From Piromyces finnis finn (Eukaryota > Fungi > Neocallimastigomycota), in assembly GCA_002104945.1 (NCBI GenBank), contig MCFH01000031.1, positions 434,001 through 498,000 of the forward strand: a DNA stretch of 64,000 nucleotides. The letters run 5' to 3'. Below, one piece after another: positions 13,843 to 23,949 of the stretch. Below the pieces are notes generated by a model. That model searched no databases. It was not told the origin of the DNA and saw only the letters and a list, made by a program, of their open reading frames with translations. A program made the position numbers and the translations under genes. The stretch's first letter is position 1. Each line of letters starts with the position of its first letter.

Positions 13843-15014
13843 ATGTTAATTATTGGTTTAACAGGTAAATAGACAGAATATAATATAGAAGCATATATAT
13901 ATTCATATTATGTAGTAATTTAAAATGTTATTAACAAAATGTTATAATAAAAAAAAATACTAAATGAAAACATAAAAATAATAAATTAAAATTTTTAAAA
14001 AAAAAAATTAAATTTCACATTTTACATTTCTATTTGATTAATTTATTAATTTTAATTTAATATTAAAACAATTTATTGGTATTTCATATAAAAGGTGGTA
14101 TTGCTACTGGAAAAAGTAGTGTTTCAAGTTACATTAAGGAAAAAAAAATTCCAATTGTCGATGCTGATAAAATTGCTCATGATGTTTTAAAAAATAAAAA
14201 TGTTATAAAAAGAATTATTAAGGAATTTGGAGAACAAGTCATTGACAATACTACAGGGGAAGTTATTAGATCGAAATTAGGTAAGTATTACGTAAAAACA
14301 AATAAAATTTCATAAAATGTGGTTATATTATAATACTAGTCCAGTATTAATTAAAATTTTAAAATTTATAAAATTAATGTGAATAGGTGAAATTGTTTTC
14401 AGTAATGACCAAAAAAGAAAAGCTCTTAATGGCATTACCCATCCAAAAATTAAAATGGAGATGTTTACTCAAGTTTTATATAATTTCTTAATTGGTCAAA
14501 GAATTGTAATTATGGACGTTCCATTACTTTTCGAATCAGGTACTTATCATTTTGTTAATAAAACCGTCGTAGTTTCCTGGTAAGTTTTTTCTTTGATTAA
14601 TTGTCTGTTTATTTCATAAAATGCAATGTTATGTTAAAAATGCAGATAAAATATAACTCAACTACTGTTTATCAAAAATTAATATTAATATTATATATAT
14701 ATAATTATTAATAATATATAATAATATATAGCTCAAAAGAAAATCAATTAACTCGTTTAATGAAACGTAATAACTTTAATGAAGAAGAAGCTAAAGCTAG
14801 AATTAACTCTCAAATGAGTTTAGAAGAAAAAATAAAGAAAGCTAATATAGTTATTGATAATAATGAAACACTTGCTGAAACCGAAAAGCAAGTAGATGAT
14901 ATGCTTGAAAAATATACACCTTCTAAATTTAAAAATGCAGCTTTATATACATTACTTATCATACCAGCTGCAACAGCTTATGGAGTTTTAAAAGGAATTT
15001 CATTCTTTTATTAG
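13843..15014 (+). CDS. CAB5: Dephospho-CoA kinase (CoaE/Cab5/DCAKD family) with a C-terminal hydrophobic anchor
   Basis: Exons 13843-13864, 14095-14280, 14387-14579 and 14732-15014 splice in frame. They give MLIIGLTGGIATGKS (P-loop), IVDADKIAH, NGITHP, MDVPLLFES and RINSQMSLEEK. Confidence 0.93.
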
Positions 15015-16501
15015 ATTTTTTAAACAAAAAATAATAATAATAAAACTATTATTATTTTTTACATATAGAAGAAGTGGAAAAAAATAAAAAAAAAAAATAA
15101 AATAAAATAAAAAGTTAGTTTTGTAATTATAATATGGATATCGTTCATTTTTGGTAAAATATAAAATTTAAGAAAATAATAAAGAAAAAAAAACATTTAT
15201 TAGTTAGATACATCAAACTAATAATAACAATAATAATCATATATGTAAATAATAAATATCAATATGAATTAATGAATAAAAATAATATTATTTGATTTCA
15301 CAAAGATTAATATTAACACTTAAATAAAAATTGTTCAAAGGTTCAATGGTTTATACATATATAAATATCTGACTATATTTAAAATAAATTGCCTTGTTGA
15401 TATTATACAATTATTATATCAATTATATTCATGTGTATAAATAAATCTCTTCAATTATAAAATGAATTTGATTGGATAGTTTTTAATTAACATATTTATA
15501 AAAGTTTTATTTAAAATTTTATTTTTTATGTTCTCTTTACACAAAAAAAAAAAAAAAAAGAAAAATATTAAGTATTCGGTTTATGTTAATATAAATAAAT
15601 AATTTTTATAAAAAGAATATTTAATATAAGATTATAATAATAATTAAAATAATAATAATAATAATAACCCACTTTTAAGTCAGTACATTAATTTAAAATT
15701 GAATCATAATTTTTGTGTGTTACAAAAGTGGAAAATTAAATTTTATTTCTAACTGAATGTATTTGTTTTAAGTACATTCGATAAGAAATAAGCTGTTTTT
15801 TTCAATTATATGAAAGGATATATTTTCTATCTAATAGAAAATTCTTTATACAAGATTGTATTCTTTTGGTTATTGAAAAAAATGAACATTTTAAAATTAT
15901 AAAAATGATTTATAGATCATGATTATATACTGTATAATTTTATTAAAGAATATAAATGTTTTTTCATCTGATTTCATAATATATAATTTATTATATGATT
16001 ATCGGTTGTTGAATAATGATTAATTTGTATTGTTTATACTAAATTTTATAATTTATAAAACATTGGATAAGTCTTTATTAAATAAATAATTAAATTTATA
16101 AGCAATTTAGAAAGTCCTTATTTGTAATTTTCTATTTTAAAAGTAAATGTTGATCAATTCATTTGAAATGTGTTTCAAAAATATTAACACTTTTTTTTTC
16201 ATTTTTTTTTTAAAATAATATTAGTTTCTTTTTTAAAATCTGCATAAAAAATATATATATATTGTATTTAATTATTAGTTAATTGGTACCTATACAAATG
16301 TTCAATTGATGAAATTAAAAGAAAAAACTATTATTTATTAAGTTGTTTATTATTTATTTACTTATTTTTATACACTATATAATATAATAAAAATATGTTT
16401 AGATAGAAGTAAAAATAGTAAATAGATCATACAACATTATCATTTAATTAAATAATGTAACAAAAAATTGTAAAGAAAGAACTATATTTTATTTCTCACA
16501 T

Positions 16502-18817
16502 TCACTGTCTTATAGAATTATTTACAGTGTTTCTTTGAGCAGATTGACTTTTGGGTTTTATATCCATCTTTTCATTCAAACTTTTTCTTTTCTGGGCAGA
16601 AGAGGATGTCATTTTTTTAGTATAAGGTGAAAAATCTTCTTGATGACTAGAAGCTTTGTAAAATGATGAAACTACATTTTCTTGATGTCTAGAAGATGAC
16701 GATGTACGACGAGTTTCCATTCTATTGGCTTCTCTATGACCTTTTCTTTCTTCATTCCTTGATGTCATAGATTGAAGAGGATATTGTTTTTCCTTTGTCT
16801 TAATTTCATTTCTATGTTTGTCAACTTTAACTTCTTCATATTCAATTTCATTACCATTTTCATCAACCTCAACTTCCTGTTCTTCATACTCTATAATATT
16901 ACCATCTTGATCAATTTCACGTTTAATAATTCTTCCAGAGCCATTCACAGCATTATTTTTTTCTGATGGTAGTATGATTTCATTACCATCTTCATCTACT
17001 TCAACTTCTTGTTCTTCATACTCAATAATATTACCATCTTGATCAATTTCACGTTTAATAATTCTTCCAGAGCCATTCACAGCATTATTTTTTTCTGATG
17101 GTGGTATGATTTCATTGCCATCTTCATCTACTTCCACTTCAATTTCTTCATATTCTATTTCATTACCATCCTCATCTACTTCAATTTCTTCTTCAACCTC
17201 AATTTCTTCTTCTTCTTCTTCTTCTTCTTCTTCTAAATGATCATGAATACTATTATTTGATTTCACTACTTCTTTTGTAGTACTATTATTAATATTACCT
17301 TCATTCATTATTTGACTTCCTTGCATTATTGAATTTTCATATTCAAAAAGATCAGTTTCACTTTCTTCATTAATCTCACTGGTTGAACTTAATTCACTAA
17401 TTAAAGCTAATTCACTGACATCATCACCACTAATATTAAATTCATTTTTACTATAGAGTGAAGAGGACTCATCATTGGTCATTTTCGTTGATTTTCCATT
17501 ATTTGAAAAAAATGATTGTATTTCACTTTGATTTTGATATTGTTGTTGTTGATGCGTGAAATTTTCTTCGGGTGCTTTGTCAGATTCAATTAGAGAGACA
17601 CTAGAAATACTTTCACTTAAATCACTACTTGCTCTTTGAATGCTTTGATCTTCCTTAACTCCCTTCACCGATTGTTCATGTAAGGATACATCGGAAATAC
17701 TTTCATCAATACTACCATTTGCTCTCTGTATATCTTGTTCTTCTTCCTCTTCCTCTTCCTCTTCTTCTTCTTCTTTTATCTCAAATGAATCATCATTATC
17801 GTCCTTTTCAATATCAACATTAATATCACTTTCTTCTTCTTTCATATCGTCGTCTTCATGACTTAAATTATTTTGACTCATGGATTGAGAAATATCATCA
17901 TTTTCTATGAAATCATCTTGAATTTCTTTAATTTTATGATCATCACTTTCAATAGATGATTCTATTTGACTATCATTTTTTAATATGCTACCAACAACAG
18001 CATTATATTCATCTTTTACTTCTTCATTTAAATTTTCGGTAAAATCAAGAACTCCTCTTTCAAATTCATTACTCTCATATAATCCGCCGTTATCTTCTTC
18101 CATAAAATTATTAATCGATAAATTTTGTTCATTAACTTCTTCTTCATCAACATGATTATCTATTTCTTTAAGAATTTCATTATTTTCAATTATTTTTTCT
18201 TCTATTTTTTCTTTTTCTTCTTCTTCTTTTTCTTCATTATTATTATTGTTATTATCAGATTTACTACCGATAAAAGTTGATTTCACACTATTAATAATCA
18301 ATTTCAAGCTACTACTTGACTTTACCATTGAATTTTTATCATCTTCATTTTTTGTATCAAGATCGGTTACTTTATCATTTTCAACATGAACGACTTCCCA
18401 ATCGCTTTCACTATCATAATCACTATCATCAAGAGCTTGATCTTCATTATCAACAATATCCTCAAGTATTTTTTTTTTATGTTCAAATTCTTCTTCGGTG
18501 AGATCATCAATAAATTCAATATATTCGGGATACATTTTTCCTGCTTTACTTTTTGCTACGTCAAATGTCATTAAATTATCTTCCGTTAAAACTACAATCA
18601 TTCGAATAATAGATTCTATCTTTGTATTCTCTTCAATCATTTTCATGTTATGAAGAATACCTTTAGTACTTAATAATCCATTGGTTATACTATGATTATT
18701 ACTTATATCAATTAAATAGTCAGCTAATTCTTTAACAACATTGCTTTGGAAAGAATCTACATTAATCGGTGTCTAAATAAATTTTATTTTTAGAAAAAAT
18801 GAAGAATAAGGAGAAAA

Positions 18818-18864
<47 letters not shown>

Positions 18865-19960
18865 GTAAATAAAAAGTAAATAAAAAAAATGGGAAATAAT
18901 ATATATATGTGAGTGTGTGTGATGTATAAAAGTTAGTAAATATTTAATATGTAATAGAAAATATGTTTTATTCTATATATATGATTTATGTTGAATTAAT
19001 TAAATTCTAATAATATAATTATTGTACCTTTTCTGTGATTAATAAACTCTTTCTATAGCCAATACTTATAAAATTAAGCCAATCTTTTAAACATTGATCA
19101 TTAATATTAGAATGAGTATCATTAATTTTTGATAATTGAATAACAGTTGTTAAATCCTTAATTGTTGAAGATTCATAAAATTGAATAGAAGATTTTTTAG
19201 TATTGAAAGATCCATTTTCTAAAGAATGATCAAAAATAACCGGATTAACATGATAAAGGCATGGAAAAGAATTCACTTCTTCATTTTTCAAGAAATAAAG
19301 AGAACGAATATTTGGAATTTTTTTAAAGCAAGAAAATTTAGATGAAGATGGTGAAGTAGGACTTTGTGGTGACATTAAATCAAGCATATTTTGTTGAAAA
19401 TATAAAATTTGTTGATATTTTACTTGATTATTAATATAATTTATTATGTCTAAATAATTATATTCAGTGGGATGATCTCTCATTTCTAAATGAAGAAGAA
19501 ATGATTGACCTGTTGATACAGTTACCAATGATGGAATGTCAGTATCGGAAGTGGAAACATAACAAATACAATCTAAAACGAAGGTTTTATTTTCATTTAA
19601 TTTTGGATCGGTAAAACGATTAAAAATATTATTCGTTTTATAATGTTTAGCACCACCACTATACTTATTAGGAAAAGTTGGTGATGTTGCTGAAAACTGA
19701 TTCTCCCCACTATTAGATAATGAGTAAGACGGAAATCCTTGATCCATCTTTTTAATAAATTCAATAGAACGAATTCTAGGGGTTTTTTTACCTTCTTTAT
19801 CATAATTATAAATTGTATTTAATAAATCTATTAAATATTTTTCTCGTTTATCCTTTCCATTTTCAATAAATAATTTTTTAAAAATTAAATCAAATTTTGG
19901 TGAAAAAACTTTTTGATTCTTGGATGACTTTCTTTTCATTGAATTCATCTTTTCTATCAT
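16502..19960 (-). CDS. Rpn/PD-(D/E)XK (PDDEXK_2-like) nuclease-domain protein fused to a long acidic low-complexity tail, about 1067 aa in 2 exons
   Basis: The two track ORFs join. The donor AAG|GTACAA at 19028/19027 and acceptor TTTAG|ACA at 18773/18772 give a continuous frame (…LLITEK|TPINVDSF…GILHNMKMIEE…). The N-terminus has Rpn-family blocks FDLIFKKLF…LIDLLNTI, VLDCIC, LHLEMR and LKDWLNFI. Confidence 0.7.
16849..17170 (-). repeat. 132-bp (44-aa) coding tandem repeat, about 2.4 copies
   Basis: GATCAATTTCACGTTTAATAAT recurs at 16909 and 17041. The unit is EIIPPSEKNNAVNGSGRIIKREIDQDGNIIEYEEQEVEVDEDGN. Confidence 0.9.
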
Positions 19961-20854
19961 TATTATTATTCTTTTTTTTTTTTTTAATAATAATTAATAA
20001 ATTAATAATATTGTATATTTTACAAGGAAAAAAAAAAAAAAAAAGAAAGAATAAATTTGTATATTAACAGAAATGAAGTTGTTATAAATTTTCTTTTTTT
20101 TTTTTTTTTTTTTTTTTTAATCTTTTAAATACATATATACATAAATGTCTTATTTCTTTTAATGATGTTTCAGATACATTAAATTTGCATAGGTTGTGAT
20201 GAATTTTTTAACTTTTTATAAATAACCTTCGAAATAGGTTTCTTTTTTTTTTTTTAATTAAAAAATGATTTTATTGAAAAACTTAATAAAATAATAATAT
20301 AATTTCTTATTAATAATATTTATTACACTTTGAATAAAAATAGTAAAACTTAATTTTAATTTCCAAATTAAAATAAAAAAAAATACATTATTCTATTTAA
20401 AAATATATTTATTTTTTTTTTTTGGATAATTCATTTTTATTTTATTAATTACTTTGATTTATGATGAATACGATAAATAAGTAAAAAAAGATGCATATAA
20501 AATAAAAGAAAAAATAAATTTATTACTGTTATTTTGCTATTTGTAAATAAATGTTATAATGCAAATGCAAATTGTTGTTATTTTATTTCAACTTTGTTAT
20601 AGTTTTTAGTAATATTTAAGCATTTTATTTGAAGTCTCATTATATTCATTATATGAGATATGCATATGTAAATAGTATGTACTAGTTTATCAAAGAAAAC
20701 TTATATTACATTAAAATTTGTAAAATTTAATTAAGATTTTATTAATTGATAGACTTTCGGTATATAATTTAATTGAATAAGAAAAAGTTTCTATGGTTAA
20801 AAAATTTAAAAATTGTTTATAATAAAATTAATAAAATTATATATTTTTTCATCA

Positions 20855-21054: not shown

Positions 21055-22207
21055 GAATGAACAAAGGAAAGACCTTTTAAAAATATTATTAATTATTTTC
21101 CTGGTAATGAAAAATAAAATAGAGAATAATCTAATACAAATAATTTTATATTTTTTAATAAATACAGCATTTACATATTTAATAGATTTTATTATTAATT
21201 TTTTTTAACTTTTTTTTTTTTTTTTTTTGGAATATTAGGTTACCTCGGTAATTAGTGGTAATTTATTAGGTGCATGTATCAGTGGAATTGGACTCTATGG
21301 AGTACAGAATGTAATTTTTTTTAAACTCTTCCTTTCTCTATTTTTATTTTTTAACTTGATATATAATAATTTATATGAATTGATTTTCTTAGTTATAATG
21401 ATATATTAAAATGTATCTTTTTTAAAATATATATAAATATATATATTATAATTTATAAAGAATAATATGGATATGATAAAAATGATATTAATTCCATTTA
21501 TTATAGAAATTGTATTACTATTATTCATTATCTTTGGATTGTTTATGGGAATAGTATCAGTCTCAGCTGTATCAAATGATGAAGATGAGACAAGAATTAT
21601 TTTAAGTATTCTTATTTCATTTACTGTTATGATTCTTATATTTACTATTTTCCAGGTATAGTAGATATATTTTTTATACTAGCTAGTTATTATAAATTGA
21701 ATAGATCAAAATAATAATAATAATAATTTTAATAAATTAATTAATTATTATCAAAAATTTTCATTTTTATCTTAGATTTTCATTGTTTACTTTATAAATA
21801 AATTCATTAATGAAATTTATTATAATAATAATAATAACAACGACAACAACATTAATAATAACAATAATAATAATAATGTAAATAATGATTTTAATAACAA
21901 TAATTATAATAATAAACTCAATGCAATGAATAATGAAAACCAAACAATTCAAAATACAAATATTTATAATGTTGAACCATCGACTGTATCAACTCCACCA
22001 CCACTACCACCTCACCCACAACAACAACCAATGAGCCCAGAACAACAATACGGTCAATATAACCAATATGGTCAATATGGTCAATATGGTCAAATGCCGG
22101 CATATCCAATGTATCCTTCAATAAATGAAACATATCCACCACCAGGTGAAGTTCCACCACCATATGTTAACAATCCTAATATTAAAGTTAGCGATGAAAA
22201 ACAATAA
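21053..22207 (+). CDS. 4-TM membrane protein with Pro/Gln/Tyr-rich cytosolic tail (paralog 1 of array)
   Basis: Phase-0 exons 21053-21103, 21239-21310, 21461-21655 and 21776-22207 splice in frame. There are four hydrophobic segments, and the tail has QYG repeats and VPPPYV. Confidence 0.75.
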
Positions 22208-23949
22208 ACTTTTTAAAAAATATAAAAGATAGAATATATAAGTTTTTCTAATTAATATCTATCTCAAAATTATAAATATAGTTTCATTATTATCCCAACT
22301 ATTATTACAATTTTCTTATAGTTATTGAAGTTTTTATAATATATACTTATACTTTTAAATAATAATATAATAGTAATTATAAGGAGAAAACTATAGTATT
22401 AAGTATTTAAAATGTCATTTTAAATGCTTATATCATTTATTTAATAAAAATAAAATAACTTTGTAATTAAAATGTTTATAAAATAACATACTTTATTCAT
22501 ATTTTTACTTATATTTATAATATGAAATTTTAAATAAAATAATAGTTTAAAAAATAAATATTAGCACACTGTATCCAAAAAAAAGAGAAAAAAAGATGCA
22601 AACCAATATCAATATAAATAATAATGAATAATAATATAGAAATAGATAGATGAATTTAAAAGATATTTATAATTAGAATTCAAATATATAAGTAATAAAT
22701 ATTAAATATTAAATATGTATATGTATATACTTTTATTTTTTATCTAATAAAAAAATTAAACTATATCAAATATTTATAGTTAAAAAAAAAAAAAAAAAAA
22801 AAAAGGCATTCATAATATTTTCAAATTTTACTCTATTAATAGATTGTAATTATATAAAGGTATAAGTATCATGTTATCCCACATCTTTCATTTTTACATG
22901 TGCTTATTGCAATTTTAATTTAAAAAAATTTCTTTGGTATTGTTACACAAAACTTGTTATATTCACCTTTTAAAAATTAATTAAAAATGAAAAGTTTTAG
23001 ATATTATAAAAATAGAAAATAAAAGATTTATTTATAATGTTTGTAAAATAGCTTATTATTATAAATTAGTGTGATGTTTTCATTAATTTATTATTGTTGT
23101 TATTATAAAGTAAAATAATGTTATTTTATTTATATTCATTATTAATTAATCCTTTTTTTTTTTTTTTAATGATATTAAAATAAATTAGTAATTCAACCAT
23201 CAAAATTAAATTAATTTTTAATAACAATAAATAAAGAATATTCATTTTATAATAATATTAAAATAAATAATATATAAATTAAAGTTAAATATTTTTATCA
23301 AATTTCACTTTAAAAAATGAAAATTTTGTTTATATTATAAAGTATCAATTATATAATAATAATAATAGTAGTAGTAATAATCAATCCTTTCTTGTTTGTT
23401 TTTTCAATCTTTTACTATTAAATATAATAAAATATAATAAAATAAAATAAAATATTATATATTTTAATGCATTTAGTTTGTTTTTTTTTCTAAAATATTC
23501 ATTTATAAAATTTCTGGTTCTTTCTTTTTATTAAATATATTTATATTAATAATTAATAAATTAAAAAGTATGCTATTGGTTTATTTTAATTGAGTTATAT
23601 TTTTTTTACTATTATCAAAAAATAAAGTTTTCAATGATTAATAATTATATATAAAAGGTATCTTTTTCTTTCTATATTTTAAATTTTAAAAAAAAAAAAA
23701 AATACGTACAAATACAGCAAACAAACAAAAATTGAAATTAAGAAAGAAATAAACGGAAACGAAAGAATTTATTATTGGGATTATTGATATTATTATTATA
23801 TTTCTTATTTAAATTTATTAATAATTCAATAATATAATAAGTTAATATTATATATAAATACAAATTAAAAAATAAAAGCATTTAAAAAATTATTAGAAAA
23901 AAACAAGAGTTTAAAAAAAAAGTCAAATCTTAAAAGTATAAAGTAAAAA

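Follow-up and report, generated by a model that had tools for sequence, protein, structure and literature searches.

The Rpn proteins of bacteria are endonucleases without sequence specificity that depend on Mg2+, are stimulated by Ca2+, and promote recombination independently of RecA (PMC5350276). Their genes move horizontally among bacteria and, as studied since 2023, form toxin-antitoxin systems of phage defence, where the nuclease is blocked by a C-terminal fragment (RpnS) that is translated on its own (PMC10400941), and in a survey of the superfamily the PDDEXK_2 family was essentially bacterial (PMC3424549). The DNA analysed here, which we call the window, is a stretch of 64,000 nucleotides (nt) from the anaerobic gut fungus Piromyces finnis (contig MCFH01000031.1, positions 434,001 to 498,000), and its minus strand carries, at 16502-19960, a gene whose product resembles an Rpn nuclease in its N-terminal part and continues into a long acidic tail. 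A preliminary description of the sequence had proposed that two open reading frames (ORFs) form this one gene, and that it encodes a horizontally acquired nuclease fold. How did such a protein come to be encoded by a fungus, and what has become of the nuclease?

A spliced gene and its kinship with bacterial Rpn nucleases

The two minus-strand ORFs (19960-19019, 313 amino acids (aa), and 18646-16502, 714 aa) belong to one gene, and the frame-keeping GT-AG intron proposed at 19027-18773 lies exactly there. Read on the minus strand, the last codons of exon 1, GAA AAG, end at 19028, GTACAA comes next, the 3′ end of the intron is TTTAG at 18773, and exon 2 is open in frame from 18772; the 255 nt in between contain in-frame stops. 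The join 18772/19028 was present in the transcript contigs of three out of four public runs (X2, X3 and X4, from at least two studies), which omit these 255 nt and read CT..AC on the plus strand, i.e., GT..AG on the gene strand. No transcript contig in any of the four runs covered the interior of the intron (18869-19019). The labelling of these runs as RNA is only a guess, with which the clean absence of intron and intergenic DNA agrees. A single contig of 2004 nt covers both exons, from 19950 through the join to 17785; exon 1 is covered by transcript contigs at 19028-19950, and on the 3′ side the contigs extend to 16409-16425, which gives a 3′ untranslated region (UTR) of ~80-90 nt. Transcript starts cannot be revealed by such contigs; the ATG at 19948, which opens the reading MNSMKRK also present in the orthologues, is a more probable start than that at 19960. 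At the 5′ end of the longest contig, 49 nt upstream of 19950 could not be placed, and these may reflect an intron in the 5′ UTR with an acceptor near 19954, or a soft-clip in A/T low-complexity sequence. Long A and T homopolymer tracts occupy 19951-20120, directly upstream of the gene.

The guanine-cytosine (GC) content is 20-31% in the gene stretch and 13-16% in the flanking DNA, and the gene is present once in the 56.46-Mb, 232-contig genome. What the locus holds is a real fungal gene, expressed and in single copy, with the following parts:

19028..19960, minus strand: coding part of exon 1, 311 aa from the ATG at 19960; a diverged Rpn/PDDEXK_2-like nuclease core
18773..19027, minus strand: spliceosomal intron, 255 nt, GT..AG, phase 0, very AT-rich with (ATT)n
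18443..18772, minus strand: cap, the first ~110 aa of exon 2, highly conserved and probably helical, following the nuclease core
16823..18442, minus strand: acidic low-complexity region, exon 2 aa 111-650, 31.7% Asp plus Glu, net charge -132
16845..17170, minus strand: tandem duplication in the tail, 132-nt unit x 2.5 (Tandem Repeats Finder, 91% matches)
16502..16822, minus strand: basic C-terminal end, the last 106 aa with a net charge of +12, and stop codon (16502-16504)

The relationship of exon 1 to the Rpn/PDDEXK_2 family was then followed at several levels. The gene was searched exon by exon, and the joined view was taken from the Neocallimastix database protein P0006. In an exhaustive phmmer search of 1.84 billion representative proteins the sole non-fungal, non-repetitive match was P0007 (E-value 2.4e-12), a protein that passes the Pfam PDDEXK_2 profile (PF12784) with 51.3 bits over profile positions 1-180 of 229. 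The window protein and P0007 are aligned by BLASTP over 284 collinear columns with an E-value of 6e-19, and in a protein-language-model search 92 of the 100 nearest matches were PDDEXK_2 clusters. A custom hidden Markov model (HMM) built from 80 bacterial Rpn loci gave the window protein 23.3 bits, or 30.6 bits when P0007 and the fungal paralogues were added, and the best of 3000 shuffled controls reached 6.5 bits. The match with the custom HMM consists of two collinear domains, one at the N-terminus and the other from the I-N-I-L-N-F-like strand to the Trp helix. Furthermore, a MAFFT alignment of 31 sequences (A4: the window protein, five orthologues, P0007, two paralogues and 22 bacterial proteins from nine phyla) was collinear across the whole domain. 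Its invariant columns were only F27, F31, D130, E159 and W294, with D24 and K278 nearly invariant.

The order of the conserved blocks is equal, over ~300 aa, to that of the bacterial PF12784 proteins annotated as 'Rpn family recombination-promoting nuclease/putative transposase', i.e., D-x-x-F-K-x-L-F, L-L-N-x-I, the core Asp, E-x-(Q), the I-N-I-L-N-F-like strand, (E/Q)-L-x-K and W-x-x-F-L, and the residues D24, D130, E159, K278 and W294 are common to both. The blocks that had been singled out in the preliminary description (FDLIFKKLF, LIDLLNTI, VLDCIC, LHLEMR and DWLNFI) are invariant or nearly so in the five orthologues, and stand in the same order as in the bacterial Rpn proteins. The link through P0007, the custom HMM and the collinear alignment indicate that the N-terminal ~300 aa of exon 1 descend, with much divergence, from the bacterial Rpn/PDDEXK_2 family, so that the homology proposed earlier is upheld. 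The conserved structured part is longer than the ~380 aa first assumed, since it continues from exon 1 through ~110 aa of exon 2 and comprises ~420 aa.

Unlike the bacterial proteins, the window gene scores below the Pfam threshold, reads ExR for ExQ, has Ile in place of a conserved Arg, carries five inserts and a spliceosomal intron, and resides in a eukaryotic host. Its cap, different in sequence, stands where the bacteria have a C-terminal helix-turn-helix-like region, and an acidic tail, basic at its end, adds another ~650 aa. Because the ExQ motif, the conserved Arg and the Pfam cut-off all fail, the gene is better called a diverged descendant than a plain member of the Rpn family. The NCBIfam scan gave no match, and for exon 1, P0007 and a paralogue from the second Rpn lineage described below (group B) no solved relative was found in the PDB by sequence. 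The other Pfam matches (SSSPR-51, Rad9_Rad53_bind and DED) were considered noise, and P0008, a repetitive bacterial protein (1141 aa, E-value 2.7e-6, 11 stretches), was rejected as a chance match inflated by repeats.

Probable acquisition by, and descent within, the gut fungi

In both word-indexed and exhaustive protein searches, close relatives of the window protein (65-80% identity) were found only in anaerobic gut fungi, namely in Neocallimastix californiae (as a 'hypothetical protein'), in an Orpinomyces model and in metagenome contigs. The ORF of every orthologue reads ...LITEK and then GT. In the Neocallimastix locus (L017) and in one metagenome contig (L018) a second ORF on the same strand opens with the residues of exon 2, and the splice annotated for P0006 matches that of the window gene exactly. 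Because the orthologues share them, the gene as such, its division into two parts and the place of its intron are older than the split of the sampled genera. Within the fungal clade Orpinomyces groups with Neocallimastix, and the branching is compatible with vertical descent.

Estimates of the ratio of nonsynonymous to synonymous substitutions (dN/dS) are rough, since dS was 0.7-1.0; exon 1 gave 0.17 and 0.26, the cap (the first 110 aa of exon 2) 0.11 and 0.28, and the acidic tail 0.4-1.0. On these estimates the core and the cap are under purifying selection. A tblastx comparison of the window with the Neocallimastix locus revealed no synteny beyond the gene itself, the matches in the flanks being of low complexity. 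As had been noticed before, no transposon ends are visible; there are no terminal inverted repeats around the gene, and the only inverted pairs are formed by A/T homopolymer tracts.

When the gene was placed in a phylogeny with bacterial Rpn proteins (maximum likelihood, 89 sequences), the fungal clade and P0007 formed one group with a support of 100/100, on a long branch. P0007 is a protein of 375 aa encoded on a 79.6-kb contig (contig 114, L002) of the Logan assembly of run ERR14657311. The contig has a GC content of 28% (25-31%), and because P0007 has RseP, BamA, TrmB, RmuC and DapF as neighbours, it is assigned to a diderm bacterium. The BamA of this contig showed 23-29% identity in four test genomes of other lineages, with no match in a fifth, and at most 36% identity across 121 sampled Pseudomonadota. 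These characters indicate that the contig is from an AT-rich diderm bacterium. No further bacterial intermediate was found by word-indexed searches that used P0007 or the joint alignment, by comparison of alignment A2 with genome contigs, by tblastn of P0007 against plasmids, or in two metagenome scans. A hydrophobic, signal-peptide-like N-terminus was observed in P0007, which is unusual for an Rpn nuclease.

P0007 is sister to the fungal clade and shares with it the derived motifs L-L-N-T-I-Y, C-x-C-Y-x-S, F-L-K, Q-L-S-K and N-G-S, at an identity of ~26-34% depending on the tool. It differs from the fungal gene in that it keeps ExQ and the conserved Arg and passes PF12784, and in that it has neither the 44-aa insert (aa 70-113) nor the 18-aa insert (aa 185-202), nor the intron, nor the acidic tail. 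We infer the direction of the transfer from the ancestral residues of P0007: because this protein lacks the inserts and the tail, has the ancestral Gln and Arg, and is found on a shorter branch, transfer from bacteria to fungi is favoured over the opposite direction. The gene has the features of a horizontally transferred one: the exhaustive search found its relatives in gut fungi and, once, in a bacterium, whereas its intron, its base composition of the fungal type and the large contig around it are those of the recipient genome. Horizontal acquisition followed by domestication, as proposed in the preliminary description, appears the best reading, because the family is otherwise bacterial, the nearest non-fungal relative (P0007) lies on a bacterial contig, and the gene is a single copy without ends that is under purifying selection and present in several genera.

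The active site and the appended region

If the domain has been kept for so long, has its catalytic centre been kept as well? The positions that bear on this question are the following, with their counterparts in Escherichia coli RpnA and their occupancy in alignment A4:

19889..19891, minus strand: codon of D24, in the motif F-D-L-I-F-K-K-L-F; RpnA D11; Asp in 6/6 fungal sequences, in P0007 and in 22/22 bacteria
19571..19573, minus strand: codon of D130, in V-L-D-C-I-C; the core Asp, RpnA D63; invariant in 31/31
19478..19486, minus strand: codons of E159-M160-R161, in L-H-L-E-M-R; RpnA E82-x-Q84; Glu in 31/31
19445..19447, minus strand: codon of I172; RpnA R94; Ile in 6/6 fungal sequences, Arg in P0007 and 22/22 bacteria
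19079..19129, minus strand: C-terminal core elements from K278 to W294, Q-L-S-K (bacterial E-L-P-K) and L-K-D-W-L-N-F; the collinear second HMM domain
19622..19753, minus strand: Ser/Pro-rich insert, aa 70-113, fungus-specific, between the first and the second core strands; predicted local distance difference test (pLDDT) 34-39

E. coli RpnA (YhgA) is of the same PD-(D/E)XK-type group, its residues D11, D63 and E82 have fungal counterparts, and it has a helical C-terminal part after the core; it is assigned to Pfam Transposase_31 (PF04754), a family other than the one matched by the window gene, carries Gln and Arg at the two changed sites (Q84 and R94), and makes its C-terminal domain separately, as the antitoxin RpnS. 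All phenotypes were lost in its D11A, D63A, E82A and Q84K variants, and the Q84A and R94A variants lost recombination and kept toxicity (PMC5350276). The replacement of ExQ by ExR that had been noticed in the window gene holds throughout the clade, with Arg at position 161 in 6/6 fungal sequences, Gln in P0007 and 22/22 bacteria, and His in the paralogues of group B. The change from Arg to Ile at I172 had not been remarked on in the preliminary description. Among the bacteria of A4, K278 is matched by Lys in 21/22 and W294 by Trp in 22/22. The metal-binding triad thus looks intact and the remainder of the site remodelled. Since the three acidic residues of catalytic type are kept, the sequence does not imply that the nuclease activity has been lost.

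Relative to the bacterial proteins, inserts are located at aa 70-113, 133-147, 185-202 (SPQSPTSP), 250-257 and 262-271. The first of them has no counterpart in P0007 or in the 22 bacterial sequences, and the earlier observation that Ser/Pro-rich inserts split the domain was confirmed for aa 70-113 and aa 185-202, both without a bacterial equivalent.

The cap is almost identical in L018 and L017, and with P0006 the bacterial profile aligns across the exon junction into it. Comparison of the cap with bacterial C-terminal domains showed no significant similarity (E-value 1.6 with the C-terminus of P0007). Beyond the cap begins the long acidic tail with a basic end that had been described from the sequence: exon 2 as a whole encodes 756 aa with 27% Asp plus Glu and a net charge of -131. 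Islands common to the window protein, L018 and L017 are found in this tail (S-E-S-D-W-E, S-S-S-L-K-L-I and E-L-A-L-I-S-E-L-S-S), together with a conserved module, V-D-E-D-G-N-E-I-(I/E)-Y-E-E plus G-R-I-I-K-R-E-I-D. The tandem unit corresponds to 44 aa that contain E-V-E-V-D-E-D-G-N-E-I and G-R-I-I-K-R-E-I-D, and one copy of it is conserved in L018 and L017. The basic end carries Q-K-R-K-S-L-N-E-K, a motif conserved in L018. The ESM Atlas model of exon 2 had a pLDDT of 0.37 from residue 43 onward, and the tail matched no Pfam family and had no usable look-alike in the ESM Atlas. The tail can fairly be called disordered and acidic, with linear motifs that are conserved, and a tail of this kind was found only in the fungi. 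That it might act as a DNA mimic or autoinhibitor, and that the protein might have been repurposed for nucleic-acid binding or regulation, were ideas of the preliminary description that we regard as speculation.

Possible roles, and a second Rpn lineage in the same genome

As an explanation of the whole we favour, with moderate confidence, an Rpn-derived, domesticated, metal-dependent nuclease of the nucleus whose activity is modulated by its tail. A bacterial Rpn/PDDEXK_2 gene would have entered the Neocallimastigomycota before the sampled genera split, and would later have gained the spliceosomal intron, the Ser/Pro-rich loop inserts, the ~540-aa polyacidic region and the basic C-terminal end. 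The core would still bind divalent metal and DNA, and the protein would most likely be a nuclear, Mg2+-dependent endonuclease, either non-sequence-specific or structure-specific, with altered properties. The acidic tail would modulate the nuclease activity or the access to chromatin, the basic end (KRK) would direct nuclear import, and the gene would no longer be a mobile or selfish element.

Several observations weigh against this explanation. Pfam PDDEXK_2 aligned with exon 1 at only 17.7 bits (E-value 0.003, aa 21-71, profile positions 1-43), below the gathering score of 27.4, and the orthologues scored 17.6 bits or gave no match; the link to PF12784, the profile named in the preliminary description, is thus transitive, through the 51.3 bits of P0007. 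When the fungal and bacterial profiles were compared with hhalign, just 38-48 N-terminal columns were aligned. AlphaFold models had a pLDDT of 33.5 with the six fungal sequences and of 54.7 with the 31 sequences (predicted template modelling (pTM) score 0.52, pLDDT 70-81 in parts of the core). With this low-confidence model, a Foldseek search of the PDB, a shape search of the ESM Atlas and an exhaustive VIA-align search yielded only noise (such as kinase N-lobes, best Z 5.3), so the structural match to PD-(D/E)XK enzymes that the preliminary description had looked for was not obtained; at this quality of the model we do not count that result against the fold. The order of the elements in the model fits a PD-(D/E)XK core (helix 40-50, strand 62-68, the insert, strand 127-136 with D130, strand 153-162 with E159 and R161, helix 169-195 and strand 217-221). 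Because the direct Pfam match is below threshold, the homology rests on the transitive link and on the custom profiles. In addition, the register around D130 differs between methods, since the pairwise alignments with P0007 are 2 residues off (C-x-C-Y pattern) and the multiple alignments place it on the catalytic column; in either register the Asp points to the same side of the strand. In the tree, the fungal rows were aligned to the remaining sequences through P0007, which favours their grouping, and the tree is unrooted. P0007 is the sole bacterial intermediate found. Finally, given Arg and Ile at the sites of RpnA Q84 and R94, the fungal enzyme may be inactive or changed.

This last point leads to a serious rival, which we consider rather unlikely, namely that the Rpn domain is catalytically dead and serves as a scaffold that binds DNA or chromatin, with a tail comparable to the acidic stretches of histone chaperones or to a DNA mimic. 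The changes from Gln to Arg and from Arg to Ile in 6/6 fungal sequences would agree with it, as RpnA lost all activity with Q84K and recombination with R94A, and so would the long inserts that split the core; the net charge of -131 and the islands kept across genera suggest that the tail has a function of its own. However, even this branch, which has diverged furthest within the family, retains D24, D130 and E159, two of which (D130 and E159) are among the only five columns invariant in all 31 sequences, and the Arg is still a basic residue at the place where classical PD-(D/E)XK enzymes have Lys. A defence nuclease regulated in cis in the manner of a toxin-antitoxin pair, held off by the cap and/or the tail until set free by a trigger, for example a virus or DNA damage, seems improbable to us. 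The C-terminal domain of bacterial Rpn does inhibit the nuclease (PMC10400941), a highly conserved, probably helical region lies directly after the fungal core, and the intron parts the core from the cap, with an in-frame Met 42 codons into exon 2; yet the cap has no significant similarity to the bacterial C-terminal domains, and the contigs, which are unable to reveal starts, give no sign of a separate transcript of exon 2 or of an internal start.

Two other explanations concern the origin of the gene, and both appear very improbable. One is that the resemblance to Rpn/PDDEXK_2 arose by convergence or chance in a lineage-specific fungal protein, with no horizontal transfer. The sub-threshold Pfam score, the hhalign match confined to the N-terminus and the lack of a structural match would be expected in that case, but P0007, with an E-value of 2.4e-12, passes PF12784, the blocks are collinear over the domain, 0/3000 shuffles came near the score, and the language-model search agrees. 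The other, to which we give even less credence, is that the gene still lies in a mobile element, or reflects bacterial contamination or a recent insertion. Rpn genes are mobile in bacteria, and the same genome has a multi-copy Rpn array; against this, the window gene is a single copy without terminal repeats, with a spliced intron and fungal base composition, on a contig recorded as 610 kb, and its orthologues in other genera have the same intron and a branching compatible with vertical descent.

The gene has a bearing beyond this locus. Rpn/PDDEXK_2 is regarded as bacterial, and here a eukaryote has kept one such domain over tens of millions of years, spliced, expressed, in single copy and under purifying selection, with a changed active-site signature and a very large acidic tail. 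A non-metabolic case, in DNA transactions or defence, would be added to the acquired genes of gut fungi, which in published surveys are mostly metabolic. Surveys based on Pfam cannot see the gene, which is sub-threshold and a 'hypothetical protein' in Neocallimastix. What Q-to-R and R-to-I changes do in an Rpn active site, and how polyacidic tails regulate nucleases, could be studied here as in a natural experiment. A bolder version, for which we see only a small chance, is that an Rpn toxin-antitoxin was domesticated and that its antitoxin-like region was replaced by, or extended into, the cap and a ~540-aa DNA-mimicking tail which restrains the ExR nuclease in cis until a trigger sets it free. 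If true, the RpnL/RpnS principle would exist in a eukaryote within a single polypeptide, where it would serve the defence of the genome or the processing of DNA in gut fungi.

The same genome contains a second set of Rpn genes, group B, in an array on contig C1 at ~1,989,700-2,088,000 (loci L003-L006, L008, L010 and L011). It includes at least five ORFs (400-519 aa) that are intact and lack introns, with PF12784 scores of 65-76 bits; some copies are near-identical, some are arranged head to head, and they read ExH instead of ExQ. Their inserts are Asn/Asp-rich and (KDD/GRKE)n low-complexity sequences. Group B thus resembles the window gene in its bacterial Rpn type, in its occurrence in the same fungus and in its fungal-style Asn/Asp-rich inserts, and differs from it in being multi-copy and intron-less, in passing PF12784 and in its ExH motif. 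In the tree it lies apart from the window gene, among bacteria and near Clostridium, Sphaerochaeta and a metagenome-assembled genome of Aeromonas, which suggests that it was acquired separately or diverged very long ago. Rpn-like fragments with in-frame stops were also observed (C157:479290-479714, C178:965208-965354, C174:298679-298864 and C2:24148-24231; L007, L009 and L012-L014), and these are apparently decayed copies of group B. At L012 there is an ORF that, judged from its first residues, resembles part of a retroelement.

PDDEXK_2 was listed without comment by Wang et al. in 2019 among 40 Pfam domains unique to gut fungi relative to chytrids (Table S1; PMC6712302), an entry that most likely reflects the canonical paralogues of group B and not the window gene. 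The main texts of two surveys of horizontal transfer in gut fungi do not mention PDDEXK_2, and one supplement lists genes of PDDEXK_3, not PDDEXK_2. The family of the window gene is not known to have been described; the mere presence of PDDEXK_2 in gut fungi has already been listed (PMC6712302).

Some minor observations concern the DNA around the gene. Upstream, contigs of all four runs cover 20228-20500 with many loose ends, which could come from a non-coding exon upstream of the gene, from a neighbouring transcript or from cross-matching in low-complexity sequence. On either side of the gene, islands of raised GC content (22-24%) are found at 14000-15000 and 21900-22500, and these suggest flanking exons of neighbouring genes.

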